Virus record (IMG/VR): IMGVR_UViG_3300033141_006329
Span: 1 to 64,000 of that record
Reading direction: 5' to 3' (one strand)
DNA: 64,000 nt
The notes below the pieces were generated by a model. That model was not told the DNA's origin. It made no database searches and was given only the letters and a program-made list of their open reading frames with translations. Shown here one piece after another: positions 20,710 through 64,000 of this stretch (positions within the stretch are counted from its first letter, which is position 1; each line of letters starts with the position of its first letter). A program made the translations under genes and the position numbers.

Positions 20710-21333
20710 TCAAAAACTTAATTTGCTCCACAGTCTTTTAATCAAAATATCAGCATCCTTATAGAGATGCCCTGACACACTATTGCTTTGAGTATTCTTA
20801 TCGACATACTCCTTTGTAACTTCCTCACCTTCAAGAATTTCCTTCACCGCATTTGGATATAATATAGTTTCACCAGTCTCTCTGTTTGTAACTTTAATAT
20901 CTTTAGTATATCCTTCCTCTAATCTCTCATTTGACCTATAAGAATTTACAATAGCATCATCCTTGGCTCTTTCCTTAATAACCTCATCATTCTCATCCAG
21001 GCACATATTAAAATCTACTTTTATTCTATCATCAAATTCTCGTTTATGTTTGGCATAACTCATAAGGGTAAAACATCCCCACGCAGCATGTGACATGTGT
21101 GGTAACCCACTTTCAGGATCAATATCTTCACCCATATACCACGCCCAAGTATGTCTCATTATAGCACCAAATATACGAGACCATTTCATACCTTTTCGCC
21201 AGTTATTGTCCTCATATTTTGCTGCACCAAAAGTATAGATTTTAGCCAATTCTATTAGAGCCTCACCAGGAATTAAATCGAATCTAAGTTTACCCCCATC
21301 GTATTTAACCCCTTCTTTTAACTTATCTTTCAT
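20710..21333 (-). CDS. dATP/dGTP diphosphohydrolase-domain protein (DUF5664-like)
   Basis: GVKYDGGKLRFDLIP, GAAKYEDNNWRKG, AIMRH, DPESGLPHMSHAA. Confidence 0.85.
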   Translation of the reverse strand: MKDKLKEGVKYDGGKLRFDLIPGEALIELAKIYTFGAAKYEDNNWRKGMKWSRIFGAIMRHTWAWYMGEDIDPESGLPHMSHAAWGCFTLMSYAKHKREFDDRIKVDFNMCLDENDEVIKERAKDDAIVNSYRSNERLEEGYTKDIKVTNRETGETILYPNAVKEILEGEEVTKEYVDKNTQSNSVSGHLYKDADILIKRLWSKLSF

Positions 21334-21355: not shown

Positions 21356-21610
21356 TCACATTACTGATCTATATTTTCCTCTCTCTTCTAAAGTCCAATC
21401 AGTCACTATTGTTTTAGCAATTAATTCAAATTCTTTGCCCTCAAAAATTCTGAATACTACATTGCTACATCCTTCACACATACAATTATCAAAGTCCTTC
21501 TTGAATTTTATGACTTCTTCCTGTGTATTGCACTTTTTCATATTATACATAGGCACTTCGCTCGCATCATAATGATCAGGGTTAGTATACCCATAATATA
21601 TAAAAAACAT
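21356..21610 (-). CDS. hypothetical protein
   Basis: 84-aa ORF with RBS. Confidence 0.5.
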   Translation of the reverse strand: MFFIYYGYTNPDHYDASEVPMYNMKKCNTQEEVIKFKKDFDNCMCEGCSNVVFRIFEGKEFELIAKTIVTDWTLEERGKYRSVM

Positions 21611-30500: not shown

Positions 30501-31617
30501 CGAGTAGTTCGGAAAAATCCTTTTTTCTTTTCTCCATTATATGGGTAGGAACTTGATTATCCACTAATTCTGCTGGTCTGGATATTCTAACTATCTCATT
30601 TCTAGATGTGCTTTTAACTTTGGGTCTGGTTAGAATGGTTTCCGAATATTGTTTCACCATCTTATCTGCTACTTTTTTCTTCTCCTCCTTAGTTTTACCC
30701 TTCATTCTTTTTGCTACAGTTACTGCTTTATCGGGATCACCTGTTACATGATAAACTATTGCAGATGTTACAACTTCATCTGTATCCAATTCATCTATAT
30801 TGACATTTCTATATTCGGGTACTGAATCCATCATATTTTTTATTATTGACTTTACTGCTACTTGAGTTTTTTCGGACCCATATTTCAGTGTATCTGTATT
30901 ATTAACAACTAATTTGGATACTACATCAGTCTCGGCATTCTCAACATCTTTGGGATCTGAACTTTCTAACATAGATAACATCGATCTAATTCTGGCAACA
31001 TTTACTGGTTTATCTTTATCATACAACAAAACAAATCTACCCCCAGAATGATCATAAAAGAATAATAATAATTTATCAAATGGTATATCAGTCCCCTCCT
31101 TCAACATGTTATATATTGGATATATTTTTCTACGTCTTAAACTTTTCATTATAGGTGCATCGAGATTAACTGAATAAACCAATACCCTCTGAAATAGATC
31201 TTCAGGCACACTTCCTACTGCCTCTATAATCTTACTTATAATCATAGCACCTCTACCTGTATTAAACCTCGTCAGTTTAAATTTCTTGGTACTATAATTT
31301 ATCAAATTACTCAAATCCAAATAAAAATTCTTACCTATAACATTTTTATAATCGCCTATAAATCCTTTTACTGGGCGCAATTTATGTTCTATTAATAATT
31401 TCTTATATTGGGGAGTCAGAAGAGTTCGAGGTTTCTTTGTAATTGGAACAAACACATGTCTAACTTGTGTCACCTTTATTCTCATGGCTGTAAATGCTTC
31501 TAAGAATTTATGATTTTCTGTAAGCATAGTAAGACTTATATTTTTTCCATCTATTCCAGCAGGAGGAATAATTAGACTATCTACGGGTCTATATGGTTTG
31601 ATATTTTTAAATTGCAT
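27565..31617 (-). CDS. rpoB: multisubunit RNA polymerase beta subunit with about 350-aa N-terminal extension
   Basis: DPLETPDS, DDGCRVMMG, GYNFED, GDKMNNRHGNKG, DIILNPLGVVNRMN, GGQKFGE. Confidence 0.95.
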   Translation of the reverse strand: MQFKNIKPYRPVDSLIIPPAGIDGKNISLTMLTENHKFLEAFTAMRIKVTQVRHVFVPITKKPRTLLTPQYKKLLIEHKLRPVKGFIGDYKNVIGKNFYLDLSNLINYSTKKFKLTRFNTGRGAMIISKIIEAVGSVPEDLFQRVLVYSVNLDAPIMKSLRRRKIYPIYNMLKEGTDIPFDKLLLFFYDHSGGRFVLLYDKDKPVNVARIRSMLSMLESSDPKDVENAETDVVSKLVVNNTDTLKYGSEKTQVAVKSIIKNMMDSVPEYRNVNIDELDTDEVVTSAIVYHVTGDPDKAVTVAKRMKGKTKEEKKKVADKMVKQYSETILTRPKVKSTSRNEIVRISRPAELVDNQVPTHIMEKRKKDFSELLVKDLTNVFKPLETENLPLKVKSVKINPIKSPAGELKKTLKDRYTIQLSGPEGEVHTVELDIPHLTENGTFVINGQPKVLVNQLITHPIFFYKPYHGRLETSYAKLTIYSQQTKSPYLMAYMSGYKLPIMMFLGYNYGFKETMELFKIKYEIGIEKKPDSIKLLDDRFITFTTSSIVGEEVISSFKRSVVSFPVNHFEIEEKGFWERVLIKEIGTRNCIYRIDQSWKFILTPVAREVLLSKGDPTTLPTVIKYICEEVVKGTVDDRNSMDKQRVRTSEVFTNQIQKQVLSAYNEYLSKKLGGDETARLSLSPTKVFSEVTNSPNCQLLETSNPMEELSMMTRITPVGIGGIPDKAAVPHKALNIHYTYYGNIDPLETPDSPMVGIQQHLTVGATISNARGTFAMKDPSLVKPSEILSVGPAMVPFVESDDGCRVMMGTGQSRQVIPTEGAEPPAVQTGYESLLTNLLSENFIKKSPVNGVIISIKPDMIIVKDKDTGKEVPIDTRSVVLKSGSGKNGLSKFKPTVAIGQTVKRDQILAEGANISEGCIANGVNLLCAFMAWKGYNFEDGIVISESAAKKYISVHVEEEKVYLEPDDDVLSIVNVGDTIDKGGILITHSKAAYDVEAYKHLRTEGGIVSNIEVYANVKDIPEKLQSVYEEFRGHFTKINGKYPLGSFKEKNERFDGIMIKFTMEQHLKMEKGDKMNNRHGNKGVVSIIEKDENMPITPWGEKVDIILNPLGVVNRMNTGQTAEAHVGLIAKELASRIKDLPKARFISLLRTVLELLDGTDNKEYSKNVISKLKSMSDKGFNDLKNQVVKKGYMSIIVPPFKGPSRTNILEALAILGLKPSYKLKLPEFNMTTDPVTIGFILIQKLEQLSAKKLASRGVGPYVSKTLAPTAGKKRGGGQKFGESDLYGLLAWDCPIIIDEMFGSLSSDHASKNEMISEIIQQGKTEFRQGKINPEKELLDNMIIACHLESE

Positions 31618-34600
31618 TATTTTTGCCTCTCCTCCGTTAGAGGTATTCCCATTAACACTTTCTCTATGGGGCTTTCTGGTGCCCTATCACTTATCATACC
31701 ATATTGAATTGCTTTCCCGAAGTTTTCGAACGAAAATCCCAATGGCCATGATATTATACTAGGTAATGTTTTTATAGAGTACATTTCTGGATTAAATGGT
31801 TCTATTAATCTGGCGGGTTGTTGTGGATCTTTTTTTGCTCTCAATATATTAGATATAATCACCTCCAAATGAGATGAATCCCATCCCCCAGTAGCAGCCA
31901 ATGCTTTATAAAACTTATTATATATTGTCGATACATCTTGCCAGGGATATTTTCCACCAACCAGTTTATCTAATTCTCTTGCAAGTTCTGTAAAGTTTTC
32001 TTGTGTCGGTTCCGCATATAATATCTTATCACCTTTAGTATACATATATGATATATAGGAATCGTCTTCCTCTACTTCTTCTGGGGTATAGATTTTAATA
32101 GGCTTTTCTATAGCTACAGGTATCTCTAAATCACCAAACGTAAGTGTAAAGTGACCTACCTTCATATCCAGATATTCTTTTTCTTTAACAATTGGAGAAT
32201 GTTCATATATAGATTTATTTATCCTAAGCATAACAAATTCAGAATTGCTAAATAGATCATCATCTTCTTGTTTAAAAGATTCTCTGATTTTAGGTTCAAT
32301 ATAATCATCTACTTTAGTCATAAGCTCTTTTATTATATCTAGTTTATTCAATATTAAAACTCCACCAAGATGAAATGAATTGTGGTTCTGCACTGCCCCT
32401 AACATAAATTCATTGGTCTCTGTTTTTATATCATATACAGGATCAATCCAAGTATATATCTCTTTTGCTACCATTATTGGATCGAATCCCTTTATAGGAT
32501 TATCATTCTTTTTAAATGACATAGGTTTAAATTCAAGGTCTTCTGTTACCTTTTCGCAAGGTATCATTTCTTTCTGTGCTGGTATGCAAATCTTTACAAC
32601 AAATTCTACCAATCCTCTCGCATCTCTATCCTTACAATGGAAACGATTACTGAGAGCAGAAATTGTAGTATGATATCCTAATTTTAAAGATATCATTTTA
32701 AACTGTTGTGTTAGATTATAACTTCGTATATATGTGCTAAACCTAGTGCAACCATGTTCGGGCATCGCACCTATAGTATCCAGATACCCTGCCAAAAAAC
32801 TTTTCAACCAATCTTTATTATAACTTAAAAAATCAGGTGCCAATCTCACATCCCCTACACCAATACCCAAAACTATACCTTCAACAATATCTTTATTATA
32901 AGTAAACACTACGTATGTTGCAGATTCTACTGTTGATCTTTTTTCAATTTCCTTGAGTTTAAAATCTAAGCGTTCGCTTTCTCTTATTAATCTATCTATT
33001 TGGTCTTCATTTTCTATACGTATATCAATTGTGTCTGGAGATTTTTTCCCTACACTACCTCTAGCACAATATGCCCCTATAACATAACCTGCTGTCTTGG
33101 GTCTAATTCTATCTTTATTTATAATGAATGGTTCATTGTCTATCCATATGGCATCACCCTTGACTACATCCCCTGCAAGTTTTTCCACCACCTCATTATC
33201 TTCGGCTATTAAATATTTGGTATGCCATGATGTATATGTCTCTTTACCGACTAATCTAAATTCTGAATTCTTGTGCCATTTACATATTGGATTTTTCTTA
33301 ATCCATAAGGGATGATCAGCTTGACATACTAAAATGTGTCCTGTGTTAGTTCCAATGACAATCATTTTATCTTTGGGTGGATGTTTTTGCATTACAGATG
33401 TTTTAACCATTCCATCTTTTCCCTGGATACTACTCACAAATTCTTTTGTTTCTAGATCGCCTTCTATCACTGGTTCTACATCTATATTATCCCAAAGGTC
33501 ATCCATAGTAATCCATCTGTCATTATGGTATACTAAACCTTTAGATGACTTCATTATTTTCTCACTGAGCGAGGCTACTTGTTGTACTGCAACCATTCCC
33601 ACATTTTCTGTTTTTAACTGGGCTAACAATTTACCATAACATGTTCTACAAATTTTCTTACTTTTGCAAAATATAGGACTCCTTAGATTAATAACTCTGC
33701 CTATCATATCTTTAGTTAGTGGTTTCAACACACCTTTCTCGTCGTGAACAAATCTACCTGTCATCCTTTTGAATAGATCCTCTGTAAGTTTAAGTTGTAG
33801 TGTCTGTCTCGTACCACAATTGCCATTATTTACATCTGCTTGAACATTACCAACAACATATATCATCTTTCTATAGCCATATCCACCTGCCCCTGTATTT
33901 AAGGATCTATCTATAGTTCCTTTCCTTGATCCAGCGGCAGCTTCAAAATATTCTTTCGGTGTATATCCTTCATTTATAGACTTGGTTATGGGCGGCAAAA
34001 CATTTCCCATAGGATCTTGAACTAGTCCTTTACATACCATCATTTGTCTTATTTGATTCATTCCTTTAGATCCACCAGATGCCACAATATAATATAAATC
34101 TGAATTCGTATCTTTAAAATGTTTCAATAATGCTACTTCTATTTTATCAAGTATGTCTGATTGTTCTGAAACAATTTTAGTGGCACTTAATTCATCCTTC
34201 ATTTTTATTAAGTGTGGCGGGATTTTGAGTTGTTCCAAATTCAAAGTTTTTGGATATATTGTATTATATTTAAATCCTAATCTCATCAGTCTATCTGTTG
34301 TATTTGCAAAATCTACATCGCTCTTTTCTATGATCTCTTTTAATATATTTGTAATTGTTTTCTTACTTACATCAGCATCTACGAAAGGATACCACTGCGG
34401 CAAAACATTATTAAATATTATTCTGCCTGCTGTTGTTTTTATTTTCTTTCCCTTGTAGGTCATTTCAACTTTATGAGCTATATGTAATTTTTCTGCATCA
34501 GCTATAGAAGAGATGGATTTAACTTTAGGATCTTTTTGGGTGGCAGCAGTAAGTGTGAATATTCCTACGATTACATCTTTAGTTAATTCGAATATGGGAT

Positions 34601-36461
34601 CATTAATAGAATCCTTACTATGTACTGTTATCATTTTATCCTTAACTTCTTGTTGGGCTTCTTCGGACATTGGAGCGTAGAGAGCCATTGTATCATATAA
34701 AAATATACCCGTGTCTGTGGTAAATGTTTTATAATCCTCAACTGTAAAATCGTAACCAATTGTCTTATTCGGATCATGTTGTATATTCAGACAAGTTGCG
34801 GGTATAATTTCTATTTCCTTAGCATTTTGTTTGTGTAACAAATTTTTAAATGATTCTGATATATTGGATTCTTCTATAATGTGAGAAGGGATTGTGATCG
34901 ATTTTTGAGTATAATTTTTATTCCTGATACAATATCTAACATCATTCGTAACATCATCTGTATTAGTAAAATCTGGATGTTTTAATAACTTCTTGGGACA
35001 CCAAACAATCCTCCCTCTTTTTAAGGGAGGGGTAGATTTTACAATCTCAATATATTCTCTTAATTTTCTTTTTTTCTCAGGGTGGTTTAAAAGAGTTTGT
35101 AGACGTATGAGAAATTCAGAATATTCTTTTCGTATTGGAATGTATAAAACATAATAATGACGATATTCAGCTGGATCTATTATAGGTATTTTCTGTCCAT
35201 CTATCCCTAATGTATAGTTTTTAATATCTACTGAAATCGAACTCTCTATACCTAAACGATAATAAAGAACATATCGAACATCTTCAATGAGTTTTTTAGA
35301 TTTGGATGTAGCGGAAACTCCTCTGGGTCTAACCATACCATCTGTATCAATATATCCTGCAAATAATCCCATCACAAAATCGTCTGTGGAATTTAAAACC
35401 CAATCGGGAAGATGCTTATCAGAACAGGTATTTCCAAATTGATTTATATTAAATGGTACTTTTCTATTATATCCCCATCTTGTTGCCGGTTTATAACCAT
35501 TTCCATTTTTATCCTTTAAATTATAGGGATGATCATATTCTCGTAATTGATTTCTAAGTGGGGGTACTCCTATAAAATCTTCCAATAGCTCTTGAGCTAT
35601 ATTTGTCCACCCATTTCCAATGTCAGTATTTGAAGAATGTAATAATGAGATCCTTTGAGAAATATCACCATCACCTAATAATGCACCTATATAATAACCA
35701 AACTTTTCTTCGGTTATATTATTTTGGATTTCTTCATTTAATATAAATGATCTAGCATCTTTTGATGTCTTGGGTCTGCTCATAGATCTAATTAAATAAT
35801 ATCTTTTAGGGTCTTCAATAATTTCTTCGGGCGTGACTTTTCTGATTTCATCCTGATTATAATCAATAGCAACGACAGAATGATTATTAGATATCCATAA
35901 TTCCTTAACATCGCCTATAAGAGTATTTTTCTTCCTCCTATTGACAGAAAACATTTTGATATTTTCATGAATCGACCAATGGCTTATTTTTTTATATTCA
36001 ATTTTTCCATCATTGTTAATAGCTTGACAAAAAATTTCATCTAAAACGCTATAATTTTTAACAACTCTACCACCATTCTTACGTTTTTCATATTCTAATT
36101 CACATCTAAATTGTTTGCAAAAATCTGAAATATGAATTCGCATTGGAATATAATTTTCATTTTCACGTCTGTAAAGTCTTAAAAAACAATAACTTGAGTC
36201 ACCATCGAAATCAAATCCGTACTTTACCGATGCTGCGGGATGTACTTCCATTGTACTTCCTTCCACAATTTTAACATAAGCCCCTTGAGATCTAGCACTA
36301 TGAACATTAGGATCTCGTTTGTATATTACAACTTTCCCAGCATCCTCTATCTCTCGTTTAGCAACATCAAAAATTACATCATGTATAGCTTTGGGAACTT
36401 TATACCCCCGACTTATCATTTTTAAAATAAGTCTTATCTCTTCTGTTGTAGCTTGCTCCAC
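31617..36461 (-). CDS. rpoC: RNA polymerase beta' central/C-terminal part containing two inteins (about 722 aa spliced)
   Basis: KRDPNVH, DFDGD, GSRKG..D...T...GY bridge helix, IMK/SFH trigger loop. Confidence 0.93.
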   Translation of the reverse strand: MEQATTEEIRLILKMISRGYKVPKAIHDVIFDVAKREIEDAGKVVIYKRDPNVHSARSQGAYVKIVEGSTMEVHPAASVKYGFDFDGDSSYCFLRLYRRENENYIPMRIHISDFCKQFRCELEYEKRKNGGRVVKNYSVLDEIFCQAINNDGKIEYKKISHWSIHENIKMFSVNRRKKNTLIGDVKELWISNNHSVVAIDYNQDEIRKVTPEEIIEDPKRYYLIRSMSRPKTSKDARSFILNEEIQNNITEEKFGYYIGALLGDGDISQRISLLHSSNTDIGNGWTNIAQELLEDFIGVPPLRNQLREYDHPYNLKDKNGNGYKPATRWGYNRKVPFNINQFGNTCSDKHLPDWVLNSTDDFVMGLFAGYIDTDGMVRPRGVSATSKSKKLIEDVRYVLYYRLGIESSISVDIKNYTLGIDGQKIPIIDPAEYRHYYVLYIPIRKEYSEFLIRLQTLLNHPEKKRKLREYIEIVKSTPPLKRGRIVWCPKKLLKHPDFTNTDDVTNDVRYCIRNKNYTQKSITIPSHIIEESNISESFKNLLHKQNAKEIEIIPATCLNIQHDPNKTIGYDFTVEDYKTFTTDTGIFLYDTMALYAPMSEEAQQEVKDKMITVHSKDSINDPIFELTKDVIVGIFTLTAATQKDPKVKSISSIADAEKLHIAHKVEMTYKGKKIKTTAGRIIFNNVLPQWYPFVDADVSKKTITNILKEIIEKSDVDFANTTDRLMRLGFKYNTIYPKTLNLEQLKIPPHLIKMKDELSATKIVSEQSDILDKIEVALLKHFKDTNSDLYYIVASGGSKGMNQIRQMMVCKGLVQDPMGNVLPPITKSINEGYTPKEYFEAAAGSRKGTIDRSLNTGAGGYGYRKMIYVVGNVQADVNNGNCGTRQTLQLKLTEDLFKRMTGRFVHDEKGVLKPLTKDMIGRVINLRSPIFCKSKKICRTCYGKLLAQLKTENVGMVAVQQVASLSEKIMKSSKGLVYHNDRWITMDDLWDNIDVEPVIEGDLETKEFVSSIQGKDGMVKTSVMQKHPPKDKMIVIGTNTGHILVCQADHPLWIKKNPICKWHKNSEFRLVGKETYTSWHTKYLIAEDNEVVEKLAGDVVKGDAIWIDNEPFIINKDRIRPKTAGYVIGAYCARGSVGKKSPDTIDIRIENEDQIDRLIRESERLDFKLKEIEKRSTVESATYVVFTYNKDIVEGIVLGIGVGDVRLAPDFLSYNKDWLKSFLAGYLDTIGAMPEHGCTRFSTYIRSYNLTQQFKMISLKLGYHTTISALSNRFHCKDRDARGLVEFVVKICIPAQKEMIPCEKVTEDLEFKPMSFKKNDNPIKGFDPIMVAKEIYTWIDPVYDIKTETNEFMLGAVQNHNSFHLGGVLILNKLDIIKELMTKVDDYIEPKIRESFKQEDDDLFSNSEFVMLRINKSIYEHSPIVKEKEYLDMKVGHFTLTFGDLEIPVAIEKPIKIYTPEEVEEDDSYISYMYTKGDKILYAEPTQENFTELARELDKLVGGKYPWQDVSTIYNKFYKALAATGGWDSSHLEVIISNILRAKKDPQQPARLIEPFNPEMYSIKTLPSIISWPLGFSFENFGKAIQYGMISDRAPESPIEKVLMGIPLTEERQK
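32379..33548 (-). mobile_element. intein 2 (390 aa) in the trigger loop, degenerate LAGLIDADG motifs
   Basis: IMK|SSKG...ADHPLW...VYDIKT...QNHN|SFHLGG; VIGAYCARG and LAGYLDTIG. Confidence 0.9.
34692..36197 (-). mobile_element. intein 1 (502 aa) with LAGLIDADG endonuclease, atypical C-terminus
   Basis: DFDGD|SSYC...SNNH...IGALLGDG...FAGYIDTDG...YDFTV...GIFLYD|TMALY. Confidence 0.85.
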
Positions 36462-37045
36462 TATAATTTCCTCATAATTTTCTTTTTCTGAAGCTCCAAT
36501 TTTTGAATAGCCTTTAGTATCTTAAATTTACACAAATCAGGATTATCTGATTCATCACAATTCTTCAATTGATCTATTAATATTGCTTTATAATCATCTA
36601 AGGATTTAATTCTACATACTATCCTATCTTCACCTTTCAAATTTTTACACGGTCCATACAATTTTGTATTATAATAATCAAAAGCTTTTTTGACAATAAA
36701 AATACCAAGAATTGCAGCAGGTATACCTATAGCTAATTTTTTAGCTAAGGGGATATTACTCTTCAATTTATCAATACCTTTAGTTATATCATCACTAATG
36801 TTTCTCGCATTTTTAGATGCAGTAGAAATATCTTTAGATGTGCCTGATATTTTCTTAAATATATCTTTGAATCCCTCCGTATAATATAATAAGAATTTCT
36901 TATATTCGTATAATCTATCAGACATATTGGAATCAGATATCATTACTTGCTCCAAAATATCTTCCAATAGCTCATCGTTAGAAGAATTTATATCTTTAAT
37001 TATATCCTTTATTTTACTCGTGTAATATTCTTCGCTCAAATGCAT
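36461..37045 (-). CDS. membrane-anchored helical protein with Cys pairs
   Basis: one hydrophobic helix; C...C and C...PDLC; stop overlaps the GTG start of beta'. Confidence 0.6.
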   Translation of the reverse strand: MHLSEEYYTSKIKDIIKDINSSNDELLEDILEQVMISDSNMSDRLYEYKKFLLYYTEGFKDIFKKISGTSKDISTASKNARNISDDITKGIDKLKSNIPLAKKLAIGIPAAILGIFIVKKAFDYYNTKLYGPCKNLKGEDRIVCRIKSLDDYKAILIDQLKNCDESDNPDLCKFKILKAIQKLELQKKKIMRKL

Positions 37046-37057
37046 AGCGTTTCTCCT

Positions 37058-37990
37058 CTACATTAATAGATCTGGGTCTAATTCTTTCCCTAAAACTTCT
37101 TTAACAGCTATATGAAATTCTTCGGGTATATTTTTTGATTGGGGTGAATTAACCAAACCGTATATTATAATAGGTTCAAATATACTACATGCCACCTTGA
37201 ATGGTAATCCAACTGTTCCTAAATTTAATTCTGGATTAGGTGTAATTACTGCCCTCGCTGAGAAATCCACACGTTTGCCCAATAATAAATTTCTAACTAT
37301 TCCATGTTTTTTAGATACCGATACTCTAATTAATTCATACAATTCCTTAATCAAGTTTTGCATCTTATAACTCAATATATCGAATATCGGCCCAGACACA
37401 CCTTTCAACTGATTAGATTGTATAATTATTTTTCTATAGAGAGCATTCAATTCACCTATTTCTGGTTTCTCTCCAGGGCTTTCAGGGATTGATATCTCTC
37501 GATACCTGGGAGGAATAACTATAAGTTTAGACATAAAGAACAGATCTTTTTTTATATTGCTATATATCATCTTTATAAGTTTATTCCTATCGCCACCCTT
37601 TTCATCTTCTCTAAATTTTATTTTTTGAATATTATCAATAAAAGAAGAAAACCCATCCAACTCCCCTTCAGGATCTTCAACCAATAATCCATCATCACCT
37701 ATAGAATATATTTTCTCGCTTGATATTAATGGTTGTATCTTTCTTTCTATCCTTTTATTTAAAATATCAAATAGTGATGGATGTATGACATTACAATTCA
37801 ATTCTATCCAGGAATAACTCTTTGCTCTATCAGGGGAAGCATCTAATCCAAATGTATCCTCTGACATCAATCCTTGTGGATGATATGCATAATTTCTGCC
37901 CATAAATATCTGGGGTGTAGATATAGGACCAATGCTATTATTTTTCCTTATAAAATCATCAGGACTAAGGATCTTAATCATCCAACCCAC
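37058..37990 (-). CDS. rpoC: RNA polymerase beta' N-terminal part
   Basis: GLMSEDTFG, WIELN, VIPPRYR, LLLGKRVDFSARAVITP, GLP. Confidence 0.92.
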   Translation of the reverse strand: MGWMIKILSPDDFIRKNNSIGPISTPQIFMGRNYAYHPQGLMSEDTFGLDASPDRAKSYSWIELNCNVIHPSLFDILNKRIERKIQPLISSEKIYSIGDDGLLVEDPEGELDGFSSFIDNIQKIKFREDEKGGDRNKLIKMIYSNIKKDLFFMSKLIVIPPRYREISIPESPGEKPEIGELNALYRKIIIQSNQLKGVSGPIFDILSYKMQNLIKELYELIRVSVSKKHGIVRNLLLGKRVDFSARAVITPNPELNLGTVGLPFKVACSIFEPIIIYGLVNSPQSKNIPEEFHIAVKEVLGKELDPDLLM

Positions 37991-51549: not shown

Positions 51550-52842
51550 TTAGATTTCAGTGGGATCATCCATATCAAAATCTGCATTGTACTTATCTAA
51601 ATATTCTGTCTTTAATACATCTTGAACTTCCTCTAAAAAGGCTTTTTTTAATTCTGGGGATTTTCTACAGATTCTTGGAAGTGTAACTTGTTGGAATTTT
51701 GGGCCTGGACAAGATGTCAATTTATACCATCCTTTACTATGATGAACTATTCTTTTTGCATCCTTCAATAATTCATAGTTTGTATACGTATTATTAAATC
51801 CTCGTTCAAAATTAAAAACTAGATTTATGGGGATATTGGGTGAAAATAATTTATTCTTAATTGCCTTGCATAATACTTTAGATCCATGAAATCCGTACTC
51901 ACCACCTATGTCACCAATTGCCCTAAGATATAATAATTGTATACTATTAAATAATATAGATCTACCTCCAGGAATATCATCATTTGGTAGATATCGAAGG
52001 GTGGCTGGTTTTTTATTGAATATAGAAATATCTATTTTAGATCTCAATTGGTTTATAGCCAATAAAGTTATATTGTATTTCACCAATTTTGGAACATATC
52101 GGGGCAACATATATGATAATATTCTAGCCTTTAATCCCATAAGTTTATTAAGATCCTCTTCATTTTCTGCTTTCTTAGGGTTTGTATTTGCTATACTATC
52201 CCATACTATAACAGATGGTATGTCTACAATTTTCTGATCTTCTTTAAATTTACACATTCCTTCTATCATCTGAAATACAGATTCTACAAAGATTCGCGGT
52301 GTTGGTCTTAAATCTTCTACGCCTAATTGTCTCAAGCGTCTTTCAGTAGTTATATCTTCAGAATCCATATATGCACAAGTAAATTTTTTCCCCCATCTTT
52401 TCTGACCAGATGCTAAAATATTACCGGCCAATGCACTCTTACCAGATCCTGGCATGCCTACAACCATTACTAAACCAGAACCTATACCACCGCCTAATAT
52501 AGTATCTAATAAATCAATACCTGTTGGTATAATTGATCTGGGTTTTGTTTCTACTTCTATATCATAACTATCTTTAAGATGTGTTTCAAATAATTTAGAT
52601 AAATCTTCAACAGATTCACTTTCCTCGGCTGTTAATTCTTTAGACTTATCTAATGTTTCTTCTTCAAGTACTACTTTCTTCTCTATCTCCTTCTTTGTTT
52701 GTTTAATCGCAGGAGTTAGTTTCTCCTTTGTTGTCTGTTTTGTTTCCTGTTTTGCTCTCGCTACCATCTTTTTTTGCCCCTTCTTTTTTTGATTTTTCTC
52801 TGAGTACCATCTCCATAGCCTTAGCATATGCGCGTATGGCAT
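51550..52842 (-). CDS. recA: RecA/UvsX-family recombinase (likely start MVARAK at 52767)
   Basis: PTGIDLLDTILGGG, GMPGSGKS, VWDSIA, INQLR, PGG. Confidence 0.9.
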   Translation of the reverse strand: MPYAHMLRLWRWYSEKNQKKKGQKKMVARAKQETKQTTKEKLTPAIKQTKKEIEKKVVLEEETLDKSKELTAEESESVEDLSKLFETHLKDSYDIEVETKPRSIIPTGIDLLDTILGGGIGSGLVMVVGMPGSGKSALAGNILASGQKRWGKKFTCAYMDSEDITTERRLRQLGVEDLRPTPRIFVESVFQMIEGMCKFKEDQKIVDIPSVIVWDSIANTNPKKAENEEDLNKLMGLKARILSYMLPRYVPKLVKYNITLLAINQLRSKIDISIFNKKPATLRYLPNDDIPGGRSILFNSIQLLYLRAIGDIGGEYGFHGSKVLCKAIKNKLFSPNIPINLVFNFERGFNNTYTNYELLKDAKRIVHHSKGWYKLTSCPGPKFQQVTLPRICRKSPELKKAFLEEVQDVLKTEYLDKYNADFDMDDPTEI

Positions 52843-53137
52843 CTGGTTGGTCAGAACTTTCTTCTTCTGTAGTTTTTCTTCTCATATCTGTTTCCAATTT
52901 TATAGATGAGTCTATCTGTCCTCTAACAGCAAGCTCACTCTTTATAATCTCTGTAACAGTTTTCATACGTTCTGCTATAAGAAACTTTTTTCTATAGTCA
53001 GTTGTTTTTGGCAATATAGCATCTAGATTACCCCGAAAATCTGTTATATCACCTAACATATCATGTAAACTACTTCTATTTTCTTTAAGCTCTTTTAATA
53101 GTTTCTGTATCTCATCAGCAGTGCTAATATCACTCAT
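52703..53137 (-). CDS. coiled-coil protein
   Basis: heptad-rich 144 aa, downstream of the actin-like gene. Confidence 0.6.
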   Translation of the reverse strand: MSDISTADEIQKLLKELKENRSSLHDMLGDITDFRGNLDAILPKTTDYRKKFLIAERMKTVTEIIKSELAVRGQIDSSIKLETDMRRKTTEEESSDQPDAIRAYAKAMEMVLREKSKKEGAKKDGSESKTGNKTDNKGETNSCD

Positions 53138-53139
53138 TC

Positions 53140-53238
53140 TTAACCCTGTAGTATCTTTAAGTTTGGATTACTGGTCAATATATCTGGCACATTTTCGAGT
53201 ACCTCTATCGGCTGTGATGACTTATTTTGGTCCTTCAT
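53140..53238 (-). CDS. possible 32-aa peptide
   Basis: GAAGGA RBS; MKDQNKSSQPIEVLENVPDILTSNPNLKILQG bridges the actin stop to the next ATG. Confidence 0.35.
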   Translation of the reverse strand: MKDQNKSSQPIEVLENVPDILTSNPNLKILQG

Positions 53239-54319
53239 TTTTTGATCCTTCTTTTTTTTCTTCTGGTTTTTGTCCATCTTTTTTCTCCTTTTTTGATTGT
53301 TGTGATGTTGCATATAATAAACAACCTTCTGCAACTGCTGTTAACGGATCCTCTGCTTGTCTTATTTCAGATATAGCATATGGAAAATTTTTAGTATTAT
53401 CAAATATGGATTTAAACATATCTAAAAATCCTTTAGGCTTACTAGTGCCACCACTGACTATTATAGGAATCTTTTCATCTATACTTAGACCTTCGGCATT
53501 CTGATTAAACTTTGCTATTATAACTTTCAATACATATTCTATGAGTGATTTATAATAAAAACTCACAGCCCCTCGAATTCTTCTTTCCCTTTTATCTGCA
53601 CACATAGGATTCATAAGATCGAAATCAGGTTTTTCTTTTATAGCCGTAACTCTATTTGGTATTATATTCAGAGATAAAGCTGCATTAGCATCAATCCAAT
53701 CCCCGGCTCTACTTACTGCAAATGTTAGTGTTGGTATACCTTTATATGAACATGCTATATTAGTTAGTCCTGCACCAAAACTACAGGCTATGCCACTATA
53801 TTTTTCTTTCTTACATTGAGAATAAATAATAGCCATTGCTTCATTCAATGGTTTAGATTTATAACCTAAAGTTGAAAAAATTGAATTGAATACTCGCTCA
53901 TGATATAATACTGGGGGTATCTCTAAATCGATGGCTGCTTCGGGTATCGAATATACACAATAACCATCATCCACTTTTCCGCCTATTAATCTTTCCATCA
54001 TCAATGTCAATACATCTAGGGCATCTATTTCTTCTGGTGATATGACCCCCTGCGCCATAGGTCTTTTAACCTTATAATTAAACATATTGGCAAACCTATA
54101 GGCATCTTCCCCTATTATATATAATGATTTAGAATCATTCATTCCGTCATCATATTCCACATAATCTATTCCTGTATCAGTTAAATCAGATAGATTAGAA
54201 AAATCATCTGTTACTGGTACAAACATATTTCTCATCGAAGAAATTTTAGCCTTTCCTCCCTGTATTTGCTTGGCGCACACGCAGAACATGGTCCCTATAT
54301 CACATCCTATGATTTGCAT
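53222..54319 (-). CDS. actin-fold ATPase, volactin/MreB-like
   Basis: DIGTMF (phosphate 1), NEAMAIIYS (connect 1), SFGAGLT (phosphate 2), SGGTS (adenosine), DPLTAVAEG (connect 2). Confidence 0.88.
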   Translation of the reverse strand: MQIIGCDIGTMFCVCAKQIQGGKAKISSMRNMFVPVTDDFSNLSDLTDTGIDYVEYDDGMNDSKSLYIIGEDAYRFANMFNYKVKRPMAQGVISPEEIDALDVLTLMMERLIGGKVDDGYCVYSIPEAAIDLEIPPVLYHERVFNSIFSTLGYKSKPLNEAMAIIYSQCKKEKYSGIACSFGAGLTNIACSYKGIPTLTFAVSRAGDWIDANAALSLNIIPNRVTAIKEKPDFDLMNPMCADKRERRIRGAVSFYYKSLIEYVLKVIIAKFNQNAEGLSIDEKIPIIVSGGTSKPKGFLDMFKSIFDNTKNFPYAISEIRQAEDPLTAVAEGCLLYATSQQSKKEKKDGQKPEEKKEGSKNEGPK

Positions 54320-54660: not shown

Positions 54661-55247
54661 AGCATATACTCCTCTTGAAGTGTGGTACCTGAATACATAA
54701 ATGGTTCTATTAAGTTACACCAATTGTACGGAGAATGAGGCACTATTTCAAAATTTAATTTATAGATACAACTATTCTTAAATTTAGACGTTACAACATT
54801 ACCACAATTCCCACAAAAATTAAGATCCGTATTCCTTTTTAGTAGTATATGAAATTCATTAAGACTTAGAAACTGATCTGACCACATTTCAATATTATCT
54901 GCTCTGTAATAAATATTCTCATCAAATCTACCATTCATATAAACCCAAGAATAATCATCAACAAATAAGTTTCTAATAGCGCATCCTCTTAGTCCATGTT
55001 GTATTATATTCGGAGCGTGTACTACATTTTTAATAGGATTTTTTAAATTATCTATATGCAATTCAAATATATTATTAATGTTTATAAAATTATTATAAAT
55101 ATGTCGTTTATCAGATCCTGGTAAAGGAGATGATACAATCAACCATGTTCCGAATGGATCTTTCTTATAACTCTCTAGAAAATGTTTATAACAAATTGTA
55201 GTTTTACCTGACTGTCTCGGTGCAATATTTAATGTTCTCATCCGCAT
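54657..55247 (-). CDS. short P-loop protein
   Basis: APRQSGKT and LFVDD, terminase/helicase-like fragment. Confidence 0.45.
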   Translation of the reverse strand: MRMRTLNIAPRQSGKTTICYKHFLESYKKDPFGTWLIVSSPLPGSDKRHIYNNFININNIFELHIDNLKNPIKNVVHAPNIIQHGLRGCAIRNLFVDDYSWVYMNGRFDENIYYRADNIEMWSDQFLSLNEFHILLKRNTDLNFCGNCGNVVTSKFKNSCIYKLNFEIVPHSPYNWCNLIEPFMYSGTTLQEEYML

Positions 55248-57943
55248 GCTCCCGAATTTGCACCACAGTTATTACAATTAAAACAAGATCCTACTCTCTG
55301 CATAAGTTCTCCACATACGTCACATATTGGGGTAGAGTCATCAGAAGATGCTTTGTTTGTCTCTATCTTACTTTCTTGTTTCTCTTCCTTTATCTCTTTT
55401 ATTAATCCTAATGATAATTTATCATTTTCTGATAAAAATTTATTACCCAGATATCTTGCTAAATAGTCCACTATAGAAGTTGCAAATCTTATATCTTCAT
55501 TTCTCGTTATACCAGCTGGTTCAAATCTAGAATACATTAGTTTGGATACTATATCTCTAAGTGGTACTCCATATTGTAAACACGTACTAACCATTATAGC
55601 AAGTGAATCTAATAATCCTGATAGTGTACTGCCTTGTTTAGAAACAGTAAGAAATATTTCTCCTATTTTTCCTGTAGGGTATTTGCCTATTGTTAAATAA
55701 CCCTCAACTGCTCCTATAGAAAATTTATGAATAAATGCATCTCTTTCTTCGGGTAGCTTTGATCTGAACGGTTCACATTCTTCACATTTCTTACATTCGT
55801 TTCTAATATTCTGTTTAACATCTTTTTCATTTCTTAATGGTTGATATACCTTTGAACCATCTCTGTAGACAGTTACTCCTTTTAAACCTCTTCGCCACGC
55901 TTCTAGATATAATTTATATATATCATCTACAGTTACATAAGAAGGAAGATTAATTGTTTTTGATATTGCGCCGGATAAAAATGGTTGTACTGATTCCAAC
56001 ATTTTTATATGACCCATATAATCTATACACCGCTTACCATTGTTTGGAATACTTGCAGTATCAAATATAGAAATATGATTTTTATTCAAAACATTACTAT
56101 TTTCTAAATGTCCTTCAGAACATAGTTCTTCTATAATTCTTCCTGTATCATATTCCGAATATTGTAAATTCTCCAAAGCTTCTCTTACTGAATTGTTTAC
56201 AGTTTTTATTATTGCTCCTTTATTACCCGATAATGTCTTATATTTAATAAGAGAATAATCTGGCTCTACTCCGAATGTATCACAATCCATCATAAAAGAC
56301 GTTGTTCCTGTAGGGGCTAATAGTGTTGCCTGAGAATTTCTAAACCCTCTATTATCATCTATCTTACTTTTAATATCATCCCAAATCTTAATAACATCTT
56401 TACTTAACTGATTTATAATATTTTTTTTGTCAGATATTATAGTAGATGTATTATCTATTAATTTTTTTTGATTATCATAATGCTGATTCAATACTTTATA
56501 AAAAGGTTTTTTATTTTCTTCAAATTTTTCAAATGACCCCTGCTTATCTGCTAATATATTACTCGTATCATATGCAATTCCCGTTAATAAAGCTGTTATC
56601 AAACCTGCAATATTTCTACCATCATCACTATCATAAGATAATCCTAACCACATTAACAATGCTCCGAGATTAGAATATCCCAATCCTAATGGTCTAAACA
56701 TATGTGAATTCTTAGTTATTTTTCTTGATGGGTATGAAGAGTTATCTACTATTATATCCTGAGCAGTTATAATTGTCCGAACTATATCCTTAAATCTTTT
56801 TGTATCGAATATTATATCTCCTTTATTATTTTTATAAAAACACTTTCGTAGATTTATAGATGCGAGATTACATGAAAGGTTTCCTGGCGCTGCTAGAAAT
56901 TCGCTACAAGGATTACTTGTCTTTATTTCTCCGCTATTAGCACATGTATTCCATCTATTTATATTTCCCGAAAATTGAACTCCAGGATCGGCAGTTTTCC
57001 AAGCAATCTCAGATATTTCTTTTAGTAAATTTCTTGCCTTAAATTTCTCACATCTTTCACCTGTAAGAACATATTTAGTCCACCATTCACCATCCTTCTC
57101 AACTTGTTCCATAAACTCATCAGATAATCTAACCGATATATTTGTATTTTGAAAAAAGACCTCATCCGACATCTCGTACCCATCACTATTAACAAATCCT
57201 GATTCTTTCAACATATGTAATTTGAGTTCTTCATTTTCCTTACAATGTATAAATTTTTGAATATCAGGATAAATATCGTCAATGCAAACCAACTTGGCAG
57301 ATCTTCTTAACGTTCCACCGGATCGAATTATTCCAGCCGATGTGTCAGCTGCTTTTAAAAAGGATACAGCTCCACTCGCAAATCCCCCGCCTCTAACTCT
57401 CTCTTTAGAACTCCTCAATGAAGATAAGTTTGAACCACTTCCACTTCCTCCTTTAAATATAGCTGCCTCAAGCTTAATATTATCATAAATACTTTCCATA
57501 TTATCTTCCACATCTAAGAGGAAACAAGCTGAACATTGGGGTTTATCTACAATACCAACATTGAAATATATAGGTGAATTAAATGTAAAATACTGATTTA
57601 TTTGATAGTATTTAAGCTTATATTTAAAATCTTCATACTCATCATCAACAAAATATCCATCCTTTTTACCCCAGTCAGATATTGTGTTTGCTACCCTATC
57701 AATCATTTGTCTTATTGAATTTTCTTTTACCTTAGCATTATTGCATAAATATTTACTACTGACTATCTTAACAGCAGCATCACTAAATGTATCTGGAAAT
57801 TCGACCTCTTCATCAAAAATTATATTACCATCCTTATCTTCTATCTTAGCTTGTCTTTTAACAAATTTTATTTCCTTGTATGGATCTTTTTTATCGTTTG
57901 TAGAACGCATTGTATCCTTTTGTTTTTCTTCGGGCTTTCCCAT
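55238..57943 (-). CDS. nrdJ: class II (B12-dependent) ribonucleotide reductase with TSCPD/Zn-ribbon tail
   Basis: NSPIYFN, SACF, RRSAK, NPCSE, APTGT, KGVTVYRDG, CDVC...CNNC. Confidence 0.92.
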   Translation of the reverse strand: MGKPEEKQKDTMRSTNDKKDPYKEIKFVKRQAKIEDKDGNIIFDEEVEFPDTFSDAAVKIVSSKYLCNNAKVKENSIRQMIDRVANTISDWGKKDGYFVDDEYEDFKYKLKYYQINQYFTFNSPIYFNVGIVDKPQCSACFLLDVEDNMESIYDNIKLEAAIFKGGSGSGSNLSSLRSSKERVRGGGFASGAVSFLKAADTSAGIIRSGGTLRRSAKLVCIDDIYPDIQKFIHCKENEELKLHMLKESGFVNSDGYEMSDEVFFQNTNISVRLSDEFMEQVEKDGEWWTKYVLTGERCEKFKARNLLKEISEIAWKTADPGVQFSGNINRWNTCANSGEIKTSNPCSEFLAAPGNLSCNLASINLRKCFYKNNKGDIIFDTKRFKDIVRTIITAQDIIVDNSSYPSRKITKNSHMFRPLGLGYSNLGALLMWLGLSYDSDDGRNIAGLITALLTGIAYDTSNILADKQGSFEKFEENKKPFYKVLNQHYDNQKKLIDNTSTIISDKKNIINQLSKDVIKIWDDIKSKIDDNRGFRNSQATLLAPTGTTSFMMDCDTFGVEPDYSLIKYKTLSGNKGAIIKTVNNSVREALENLQYSEYDTGRIIEELCSEGHLENSNVLNKNHISIFDTASIPNNGKRCIDYMGHIKMLESVQPFLSGAISKTINLPSYVTVDDIYKLYLEAWRRGLKGVTVYRDGSKVYQPLRNEKDVKQNIRNECKKCEECEPFRSKLPEERDAFIHKFSIGAVEGYLTIGKYPTGKIGEIFLTVSKQGSTLSGLLDSLAIMVSTCLQYGVPLRDIVSKLMYSRFEPAGITRNEDIRFATSIVDYLARYLGNKFLSENDKLSLGLIKEIKEEKQESKIETNKASSDDSTPICDVCGELMQRVGSCFNCNNCGANSGACG

Positions 57944-58961: not shown

Positions 58962-58978
58962 TTTTTAATTTGTCCAGT
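58962..58978 (-). promoter_or_regulatory. ACTGGACAAATTAAAAA motif
   Basis: 17-nt exact match to 61309-61325. Confidence 0.6.
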
Positions 58979-61308: not shown

Positions 61309-61325
61309 TTTTTAATTTGTCCAGT
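61309..61325 (-). promoter_or_regulatory. ACTGGACAAATTAAAAA motif
   Basis: just downstream of a terminator, upstream of the nuclease gene. Confidence 0.6.
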
Positions 61326-61348
61326 AGCACGTGTGGATTTTTGATTTT

Positions 61349-61381
61349 AAAAAGTGCGGGAAGCTTGGCGTCTTCCCACAC
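61349..61381 (-). terminator. intrinsic terminator
   Basis: GTGTGGGAAG/CTTCCCGCAC 10-bp stem, 8-nt loop, then TTTTT. Confidence 0.75.
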
Positions 61382-61412
61382 GTATTATTCTTGGCAACAT
61401 ATATTCAAAGAT

Positions 61413-61586
61413 TTACTTCAATCGCTTTTCTTTGAATTTCTCTAAATATTTATTAATACTTTTCTCGGACTTCGGGACATAAGACTTTGCTATATCTACA
61501 AGTACGCTAGAATCCTCACGGGGTTCTTCTCCAACTGGACATCAGCCTCCGTATCCCTTCTTATATTTAATATTCGTAATCCCCAT
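61413..61586 (-). CDS. 57-aa ORF with in-frame UGA at codon 15 (candidate selenoprotein)
   Basis: AGGAGA RBS; MGITNIKYKKGYGG[TGA]CPVGEEPREDSSVLVDIAKSYVPKSEKSINKYLEKFKEKRLK; hairpin 3' of the TGA. Confidence 0.55.
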
Positions 61587-61596
61587 ATACTATCTC

Positions 61597-61800
61597 CTAT
61601 GTCAAAACACCGCCATCAATCGTGTCAACATGAACCTCTACATCACCGGTACCTGCATCAGTTCCGGTCGAGTAAATAGTCACATTGTTCCCTGCTACTA
61701 CCTTAGTTATAACAGCATCTCCAGATGTGGTTGTGTTTAGATCAACTCTTTTCACATCACCATCTTTTAGTTGATTGCTTCTAACTTGTGTTCTTGGCAC
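61597..61800 (-). CDS. small tail-fibre-associated protein
   Basis: 67 aa, beta-rich, ends IDGG like the fibre. Confidence 0.6.
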   Translation of the reverse strand: MPRTQVRSNQLKDGDVKRVDLNTTTSGDAVITKVVAGNNVTIYSTGTDAGTGDVEVHVDTIDGGVLT

Positions 61801-61836: not shown

Positions 61837-63999
61837 TTATAAAGTTCCACCATCTATTTCAGTTATAGTAACATCACCGGATGATACTGTGAAATTTGCA
61901 GTGTTGAATGTTGCTATACCTTTATTACTATCACTTGCATCTTCACCTGCTATAGTGATATCCGCACCTGCTCCAGATGTATTAATGCCTTCTCCACCTT
62001 TGATTCCAAAACCATGAGTCGAAGGTGTAGCGGCAGAACCATCAGAATCAACAGTCTTAACAACCGTATCCTCTAAACTAACTGCACCTGAAGAAACATC
62101 AAAGTCAGCCGTTGCAAACGAAGCAACGCCCTTCTGTGAATCTGTAGCATCCTTAGCTGTAATTGTAACTGTAGTACCAGTGGCTGATGTATCAATACCT
62201 TGTGCATCAGTACCTGCTATAGTTGCTTGATGTGATGAAAATGTAGCGGTTCCACTATCGCTAGCAATTGATTTGGCTACACTATTATCAAGACTAATAA
62301 TACCAGTAGTATCATCAAAATCCTGAGATACAAATGTAGCAACACCCTTTGTAGAACCATCGGCTGCTGCATTATCGCCGGCAATACTAATATTATTATC
62401 AGAAACTGTAGTTGTAATACCAGTTCCACCCGCAACAACAAGCGTTTCACCAAGAGAAACAGTATCATCATCACCGCTATCGCAATCTATTGTTATAACA
62501 CTATTTGCAAGATTATCATTGGTAACACCACTAGATTTTATTCTAATGCCATCAGATCCATTAAACTCCAATCCATCAGCCGCATCTAATTTAACTTGTA
62601 AATCATTACCATTTAAAGTAAGACCAGCATCTGCATCATAGTCGGCTTTAAATACATCACCGTCTCTCTGAACACCGTGACTACCAGATAAATCATCTAT
62701 AGTATCTGTAGCAGCAATTGTTATCGTATCTGTATTAGGATCTGTTGTAATCACAATGTCATTACCTGCTGCAAATGTAAGTGTATCGGTTTCACCATCT
62801 GCAACTACATTACTTTGTCCAGACACGGCAACGGTTTTAAATACATCTTTAGTAGCCTGAGTATCATAAATTTCCTCAAGGGCACCTTCCACTGTCGTAG
62901 CAGTAAATTTAGCACTTGAATCTAATATTGGTATATCTTCAGCATTAACTTGATTTGCTCCTTCTCCCCAGTCGATTAAAGTATCATCAATACCATTTGC
63001 AACTAAAGAAACATTACCTGTAGTAACGGAGAAATGATTAGAATCAAACTTAGCAATACCTTTATTGCTATCACTTGCATCTTCACCTGCTATAGTAATA
63101 TCTGCACCAGCACCTGATGTGTCAATACCTTCTCCACCCTTAACACCAAAACCATGAGTTGAAGGTGTCGCAGCAGATCCGTCAGAAGCAACAGTTTTAA
63201 CAACCGTATCTTCTAAAGTTACTGCACCGGCTGCAACATCAAAATCACCACTATCAAATTGAGCTATACCCTTAACAGCAGTACTTGCATCAGAAGCTGT
63301 AATCGTAATTTTACCCGAAGAAGTTGTAGTTGCTATACCAGTTCCACCCTCTATATCAAGAGTTTCACCCAAACTTATATCATCTGTCCCTGCATCATCA
63401 GAAGTAACTGTGATGTGATCATTTGCCAATTCAGCATTAGCAACACCATCATCTTTTATAGTTACTACACCACCAGCAACACCAAAGTTATCACCGCTAA
63501 AACTAGCAATACCTTTATTAGATGTTGAAGCAGCTTCTCCCGAAACTGTGAGTGTATTTGCTTCATCGTCATAAGATATGTCTACACCATCACCTTCAAC
63601 CAATAATGATGATACTCTATCATCACATAACTCATCACTAAAGAATTTCTTAGTTCCTTCAGTTATGTCATCGGTTGTAGCATCGGCAGATATAACACCA
63701 GCAGTAACTTTAACAACACCAGTTCCTGATCCAATTGTAGCACCTGCAAATGTAGGACTCGATCCAGTAGCAATTGTTTGATCTAATCCATCCAGATTTC
63801 CAAATTCAGTAGTAGTAAGAGCATTTGCACCTATTGTAAATCCCGTAGCGGTCAAAACCTGTCCAGCATTCCAAGCTCCACTCAATCCTCTTGTACCATC
63901 TGCTCGTAAATATTGAGCATGATCATCATCAGCTAGTCCTTGTAATGAACCATGATCCTGCGTAGATCCAATATTAACCCAAGCTGTACCATTAAACTG
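61837..63999 (-). CDS. tail fibre protein, 5'-partial (frame open to the window end)
   Basis: G/T/D-rich modular repeats, about six KG(I/V)AxF units; [17 protein letters not shown] upstream of the called start. Confidence 0.8.
61910..63245. repeat. imperfect direct repeat of about 195 bp inside the fibre gene (about 61910-62105 and 63050-63245)
   Basis: [52 protein letters not shown] twice, 1140 nt apart. Confidence 0.85.
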
Positions 64000-64000
64000 A

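Follow-up and report, generated by a model that had tools for sequence, protein, structure and literature searches.

The window analysed here is a stretch of 64,000 nucleotides (bases 1-64000 of the 223-kb viral contig IMGVR_UViG_3300033141_006329) with a GC content of about 32%, in which all long ORFs lie on the minus strand. It encodes multi-subunit RNA polymerase subunits (one carrying a LAGLIDADG intein), a class II ribonucleotide reductase, topoisomerase subunits, a RecA-like protein, two radical-SAM proteins, a baseplate gp5-like protein and a tail-fibre-like gene, and belongs to a jumbo phage. Its only recognisable relatives among GenBank phages are very distant: the flap endonuclease (FEN) discussed below is only 23-26% identical to proteins of Staphylococcus and Listeria jumbo phages, and a megablast of the region against GenBank phages returned nothing. 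Near the end of the window, between the tail-fibre-like gene and the FEN gene, lies a small uncalled ORF interrupted by an in-frame TGA. The features of this locus are as follows:

61837 to beyond the window end (minus strand), tail-fibre-like gene that runs off the window (1051 aa in the locus L008, DUF2793)
61597..61800 (minus strand), upstream 67-aa gene, also present before the micro-ORF in the locus L004
61593..61598 (minus strand), ribosome-binding site AGGAGA, 6 nt before the ATG and overlapping the TAG stop of the 67-aa gene
61413..61586 (minus strand), micro-ORF of 58 codons including the in-frame TGA and the final TAA (61415-61413), giving a 57-residue basic peptide if read through
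61545..61586 (minus strand), N-terminal 14 codons, from the ATG at 61586-61584, with the motif MGIxNxKxK and ending Gly-Tyr-Gly-Gly
61542..61544 (minus strand), in-frame TGA, the proposed selenocysteine codon
61539..61541 (minus strand), TGT (Cys) codon directly after the TGA
61509..61527 (minus strand), SECIS-like hairpin after a 14-nt spacer: 5' arm 61527-61521, loop CGUGA 61520-61516, 3' arm 61515-61509
61416..61538 (minus strand), 41 sense codons after the Cys, including a Lys-rich C-terminal segment predicted to be helical
61349..61381 (minus strand), intrinsic-terminator-like hairpin (61381-61354; 10 bp, 6 GC) followed by TTTTT, 32 nt after the TAA
60103..61275 (minus strand), downstream gene for a 390-aa 5'-3' exonuclease/flap endonuclease (PF01367/PF02739 annotations on homologues)

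The first-pass annotation, which had described this ORF, its TGA and its hairpin from the sequence alone, is correct at every coordinate. It is also correct in treating TGA as a normal stop elsewhere: TGA ends ORFs 20710..21333 and 21356..21610, and 14 of 74 long ORFs overall, including well-defined genes such as the 901-aa ribonucleotide reductase, while genes of up to 1614 codons contain no in-frame TGA.

Taken alone, the hairpin of the window is unimpressive. It scores -3.3 kcal/mol, it is not part of the local minimum-energy fold, which prefers another helix, and the 81-nt stretch folds no better than shuffles (z = +0.88), so that on the window alone the finding would have been a coin toss. 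However, only 2 of 2443 TGA triplets in the window have such a hairpin with a GU loop at these spacings, and among 12 cases on the coding strand of a start followed by TGA and at least 30 open codons, only this one has the hairpin. No Rfam family reached its gathering score in the window, and only chance-level hits appeared in 61330-61620.

We then asked whether the TGA could be an error, working from assembled contigs. A public run labelled as a marine sediment metagenome holds a 10.2-kb contig (L002), assembled at about 11x word depth, from a strain that differs from the window at about 4% of positions. It keeps the TGA, has no indel in the ORF and has an identical terminator-like hairpin. 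All three substitutions before the TGA are synonymous third-position changes; after it, there are two synonymous changes and three conservative hydrophobic replacements (V>A, L>I, V>L).

As the FEN protein has a family of relatives at 45-50% identity on long phage-like contigs, we examined the surroundings of these genes. Five further lineages, from independent assemblies, have an unannotated gap just upstream of FEN that holds the same micro-ORF: L003:3273-3449 (same sequence in L004), L005:3264-3416 (same sequence in L006 and L050), L007:3261-3416, L060:2246-2392 (the twin locus L061 shows the same called genes) and L081:2319-2480. Besides the strain L002, the TGA is found in assemblies from at least eight other samples. 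Each copy begins MGIxNxKxK, except L060, which has a shorter, divergent N-terminus; the UGA follows 2-5 residues later, then Cys (four lineages) or Gly-Cys (L060 and L081), then 38-45 sense codons ending in a Lys-rich segment with a shared S-K-x-I-I/N-K-Y-I/L-K-K-like motif. This Cys is the only invariant column in the alignment of the post-UGA pieces. Standard gene callers, which stop at the UGA, miss this gene entirely, and none of the loci fetched had it annotated.

Peptide identity between lineages is only 18-31%, yet every ORF length is a multiple of three and frame 0 is open in all of them. L005 against L007 shows substitutions by codon position of 13/13/23, that is, a third-position excess. 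There is no conserved in-frame start after the UGA (only L007 has a GTG, which lies inside the hairpin loop), and the +1 ATG inside TGATG opens only 1-8 non-conserved codons, so that neither independent initiation nor translational coupling through this ATG was retained. We therefore take the region after the UGA to be translated as a continuation of the region before it. Bypassing of the T4 gene-60 type was likewise rejected, as frame 0 and the Cys after the UGA are conserved. The gene is not found everywhere FEN is: more distant FEN relatives lack it, including a contig binned into a Candidatus Peribacteraceae MAG and the 15 further IMG/VR contigs recovered with a FEN profile. FEN as a single query found only the phage's own contig in IMG/VR and nothing in JGI contigs, and the FEN profile found nothing in GTDB genomes.

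In every member, a 7-8 bp hairpin begins 14 nt after the UGA, or 17 nt (one codon more) in L003 and L060. The 5' arms, loops and 3' arms are:

window: AGAACCC, CGUGA, GGAUUCU
L003: UGUAACU, CGUGG, GGUUACA
L005: GAUAUCU, AGUGU, AGAUAUC
L007: AGUUCCC, AGUGU, GGGUACU
L060: GGAAUCU, AGUUU, AGAGGCC
L081: AGAAUCU, GGUUC, AGAUUCU

The stems differ in sequence but stay paired. On the alignment of seven sequences, 87.8% of cells form standard pairs, against 16-51% when the 3' partner is slid by 1-3 columns; five of seven pairs show changes on both sides, and none of 500 shuffles reaches the observed pairing or covariation score. The register was chosen by eye, although it is fixed by the reading frame relative to the UGA. 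RNAalifold predicts the same helix plus a closing pair around a G-U-(G/U) triloop, and single-sequence minimum-energy folding recovers it in five lineages. The loop G and U are invariant and sit at positions 2 and 3 of a codon whose first base varies (AGT, CGT or GGT, giving Ser, Arg or Gly), the reverse of a protein-level constraint; the constraint is therefore on the RNA, not the protein. No T run follows the hairpin, and we rejected its reading as a terminator.

We compared this family with the bacterial SECIS consensus (PMC13188914), which requires an apical loop of 3-9 nt, an upper stem of 4-16 bp, a G in the first two loop positions, mostly as N1-G-[G|U]-N-N2 with N1 and N2 pairing, 16-37 nt between the UGA and the loop, and a minimum free energy of -7.5 kcal/mol or lower. 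All members have a 7-8 bp stem, a 5-nt loop (or a 3-nt loop plus closing pair) with the invariant GU, and 21-25 nt between UGA and loop; N1 and N2 can pair in 5 of 6 lineages. Stability is the weak point: hairpin-only energies are -3.3 (window), -2.2 (L002), -7.0 (L003), -7.3 (L005), -6.4 (L007), -5.2 (L060) and -8.2 kcal/mol (L081), so that only L081 passes the threshold. This threshold was set on mostly GC-richer genomes and on longer elements.

No homologue with Cys at the UGA position was found, either by similarity of the 42-residue post-UGA piece to known phages (tblastn), by searches, including a profile search, of 5.8 billion proteins, by phmmer against 1.84 billion representatives or by pattern scans of IMG/VR, bearing in mind that a query of 40-50 residues has little statistical power and that UGA-containing copies are invisible to protein databases. 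DNA-pattern scans for the N-terminal motif plus TGATGT, TGAGGNTGY or TGBTGY returned the phage's own contig, one known member and chance matches. The profile search did find one full-length protein, P0057 (51 aa, from a 959-bp JGI contig), about 86% identical to the L007 peptide, with W where the others have the UGA. Such a W could come from gene calling of a short AT-rich contig under a TGA=Trp table, but a real TGG remains possible. A PHROGs scan and a protein-atlas look-up of the peptide and of P0057 gave nothing usable. No tRNA and no SelA-, SelB- or SelD-like domain were seen in the 74 kb of the 223-kb contig that could be read.

The reading we favour, which we consider more likely than not though far from certain, is that the micro-ORF encodes a phage micro-selenoprotein of 50-57 residues. 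It would be transcribed at the end of the tail-fibre gene block and translated from its own Shine-Dalgarno sequence; as the ribosome reaches the UGA (codon 15 in the window), the hairpin would sit at the mRNA entry site, its N-G-U-N-N loop would be bound by the host's SelB.GTP.Sec-tRNA(Sec), selenocysteine would be inserted and translation would continue for 42 codons. That SelB reads the hairpin, that Sec is the residue inserted and that the host has the Sec trait are inferences. The first-pass annotation had proposed such a Sec-Cys redox microprotein using host SelB and tRNA-Sec, and this is supported: among the tests it named as able to refute it, all those that could be run came out in its favour. 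In contrast, its mention of sulfate reducers has no support here, and the conserved neighbour is the downstream FEN gene rather than the tail-fibre genes with which it had linked the peptide. In the window, L005 and L007, a hairpin or terminator separates the micro-ORF from FEN; in L081, FEN follows after about 20 nt, and in L060 the stop overlaps the FEN ATG.

The product would combine the N-terminal motif, whose alternating conservation (I3, N5, K7, K9) suggests a strand docking onto a partner, a vicinal Sec-Cys (or Sec-Gly-Cys) pair able to form a selenenylsulfide, and a Lys-rich C-terminal part, predicted to be helical in a low-confidence model of P0057 (pLDDT 63, helix at residues 20-49). 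We infer, without having shown it, a redox or covalent thiol-reactive accessory function, exerted on a partner onto which the N-terminal strand and the basic helix dock.

Other explanations have to be weighed against this one. Programmed read-through without selenocysteine, by a standard tRNA such as tRNA-Trp or by a phage suppressor tRNA, with the hairpin stimulating read-through or pausing the ribosome, would yield an 11-14-residue peptide along with the 50-57-residue form. The W of P0057, the absence of Cys-homologues and of detected Sec machinery, and the weakness of the hairpins speak for it, yet the loop pattern and the UGA-to-loop spacing match the SelB-type consensus specifically, no tRNA was found in the 74 kb read, and the base after the UGA is U or G, probably the stronger termination contexts (Poole et al. 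1995). Structure-stimulated, SelB-independent read-through does not appear to be known in bacteria and would be a new recoding mechanism there; we hold this alternative as unlikely but not excluded. The phage Qbeta A1 protein also arises by decoding a UGA stop, but its read-through is likely a low-level near-cognate Trp insertion that needs no downstream hairpin and extends a complete coat protein, whereas here the pre-UGA part is only 7-14 residues and a SECIS-like hairpin co-varies.

It is also improbable that the UGA is a true stop, with the short MGIxNxKxK peptide as sole product and a conserved RNA element downstream, controlling for example mRNA stability or FEN translation. The N-terminal motif is indeed the best conserved part, gene callers stop there, and FEN follows at once or overlaps in L060 and L081; however, frame 0 stays open for 38-45 codons in six AT-rich lineages despite indels that are all multiples of three, substitutions after the UGA are of the coding type, and a C-terminal motif and an invariant Cys are conserved. 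An alternative genetic code (tables 4 or 25, or late-gene recoding by a suppressor tRNA) could be suggested by P0057 and by the distant FEN relative in the Peribacteraceae MAG, a candidate-phyla-radiation lineage, but we regard it as very unlikely: stop-codon-recoded phages have many recoded stops spread over their late genes, whereas here TGA is an ordinary stop, a single coding-strand TGA in 64 kb has this arrangement, a position-specific UGA with a co-varying hairpin is not what a code change predicts, and the Peribacteraceae-binned contig lacks the micro-ORF. No tRNA was found in the window or in any fetched locus, two thirds of the genome remaining unseen. As for a sequencing or assembly error or a pseudogene, nothing supports it beyond the bare presence of a stop, and it is refuted by the occurrence of the same TGA in independent assemblies from about ten samples and in lineages with 20-30% peptide identity.

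The mechanism proposed is the known bacterial one, as in selenoprotein genes of the E. coli fdhF type, where an in-frame UGA is followed inside the coding region by a hairpin with G then U in a small apical loop. What differs here is the phage origin, an orphan family of about 50 residues with the UGA at codon 8-15, the U-C or U-G-C motif near the N-terminus, and a minimal, weak hairpin (-2 to -8 kcal/mol). We found no description of a phage-encoded selenoprotein in the literature searched. A review of viral recoding (PMC8310308) names only two poxvirus selenoproteins, the glutathione peroxidases of molluscum contagiosum and fowlpox viruses, which also depend on the host's selenocysteine machinery and, in fowlpox, have the SECIS in the coding region; those, however, are genes of known function captured from the host by eukaryotic viruses, with eukaryotic SECIS elements. 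A 2026 review of prokaryotic selenoproteomes (PMC13188914) mentions no phage or virus, and some huge phages have been reported to carry predicted tRNA-Sec genes, with only speculation about selenoproteins (PMC10747093).

A conserved phage micro-gene with a UGA and a co-varying SECIS would fill that gap. If the favoured reading is true, these jumbo phages encode a selenoprotein family without cellular homologue, which would be the first known in viruses of prokaryotes, in which a minimal 19-nt SECIS hijacks the host's SelB and tRNA(Sec) to place a Sec-Cys warhead near the N-terminus of a 50-residue basic peptide. It would provide an unusually small natural SECIS and selenopeptide for engineering, it would show that phages exploit the 21st amino acid, and the gene would mark the hosts as selenocysteine users, giving a sequence marker for their prediction.

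The only full-length database protein of the family is P0057, from a 959-bp JGI contig, a relative of the micro-ORF at L007:3261-3416; it is recorded with W at the UGA position, either because the gene was called under a TGA=Trp table or because the codon is really TGG. Small ORFs upstream of FEN in two further relatives, at L059:3-128 (the end of the 236-kb contig Ga0248672_100001) and L082:2295-2468, end with a similar K-S-I-D-K-Y / S-F-L-D-K-Y motif; one is cut by the contig end, while the other has no UGA or Cys. They may be diverged or Sec-less relatives of the C-terminal part.

Besides the micro-ORF, we noted the following features in the window:
27565-37990 (-), multi-subunit RNA polymerase genes
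51550-53137 (-), a RecA-like ORF and the preceding 144-aa ORF
53222-54319 (-), a 365-aa protein matching Volactin
55238-57943 (-), class II ribonucleotide reductase (901 aa)
58969-58978 (-) and 61316-61325 (-), two exact copies of a short motif
61837-64000 (-), a tail-fibre-like gene that runs off the window

The RNA polymerase genes comprise a beta-like ORF of 1350 aa, a beta'-like ORF of 1614 aa that carries a LAGLIDADG/intein insertion, and a separate 310-aa ORF matching Rpb1 domain 2. The ribonucleotide reductase of the window shows no intein hit, whereas relatives of 1204-1365 aa (compared at L005, L006, L081 and the place of protein P0005) carry Intein_splicing, LAGLIDADG or HNH insertions. 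The 365-aa protein matches Pfam Volactin (PF25216) at E = 1e-61 and is an actin-family protein in a jumbo phage. The RecA-like ORF (51550..52842) overlaps the preceding 144-aa ORF (52703..53137) by 140 nt, which could reflect a mis-set start or a recoding site. The tail-fibre-like gene (also L008:1277-4432) is 1051 aa in the contig and carries DUF2793; in the related strain, two of its internal segments (62081-62331 and 62376-63095) are skipped or replaced, suggesting repeat-mediated fibre variation.

The exact motif ACTGGACAAA lies 26-41 nt upstream of two gene starts in the window, namely those of FEN and of the PDDEXK-like gene; it also lies upstream of FEN in L002-L004 (about position 3455 in L003) and of another gene in L082 (about position 2090). 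It could be a phage promoter element, although window-wide counts with one mismatch are not above chance (8 against 4.5). In the L005 and L007 lineages, a conserved hairpin, GGGAGAGA...TCTCTCCC, followed by AAYAATATTCTTAC, lies between the micro-ORF and FEN (L005:3440-3480, L007:3440-3480); it differs from the terminator of the window. In the L060 lineage, the final TGA of the micro-ORF overlaps the FEN ATG (TGATG, L060:2387-2391); FEN translation may, therefore, be coupled in this lineage to read-through of the internal UGA.
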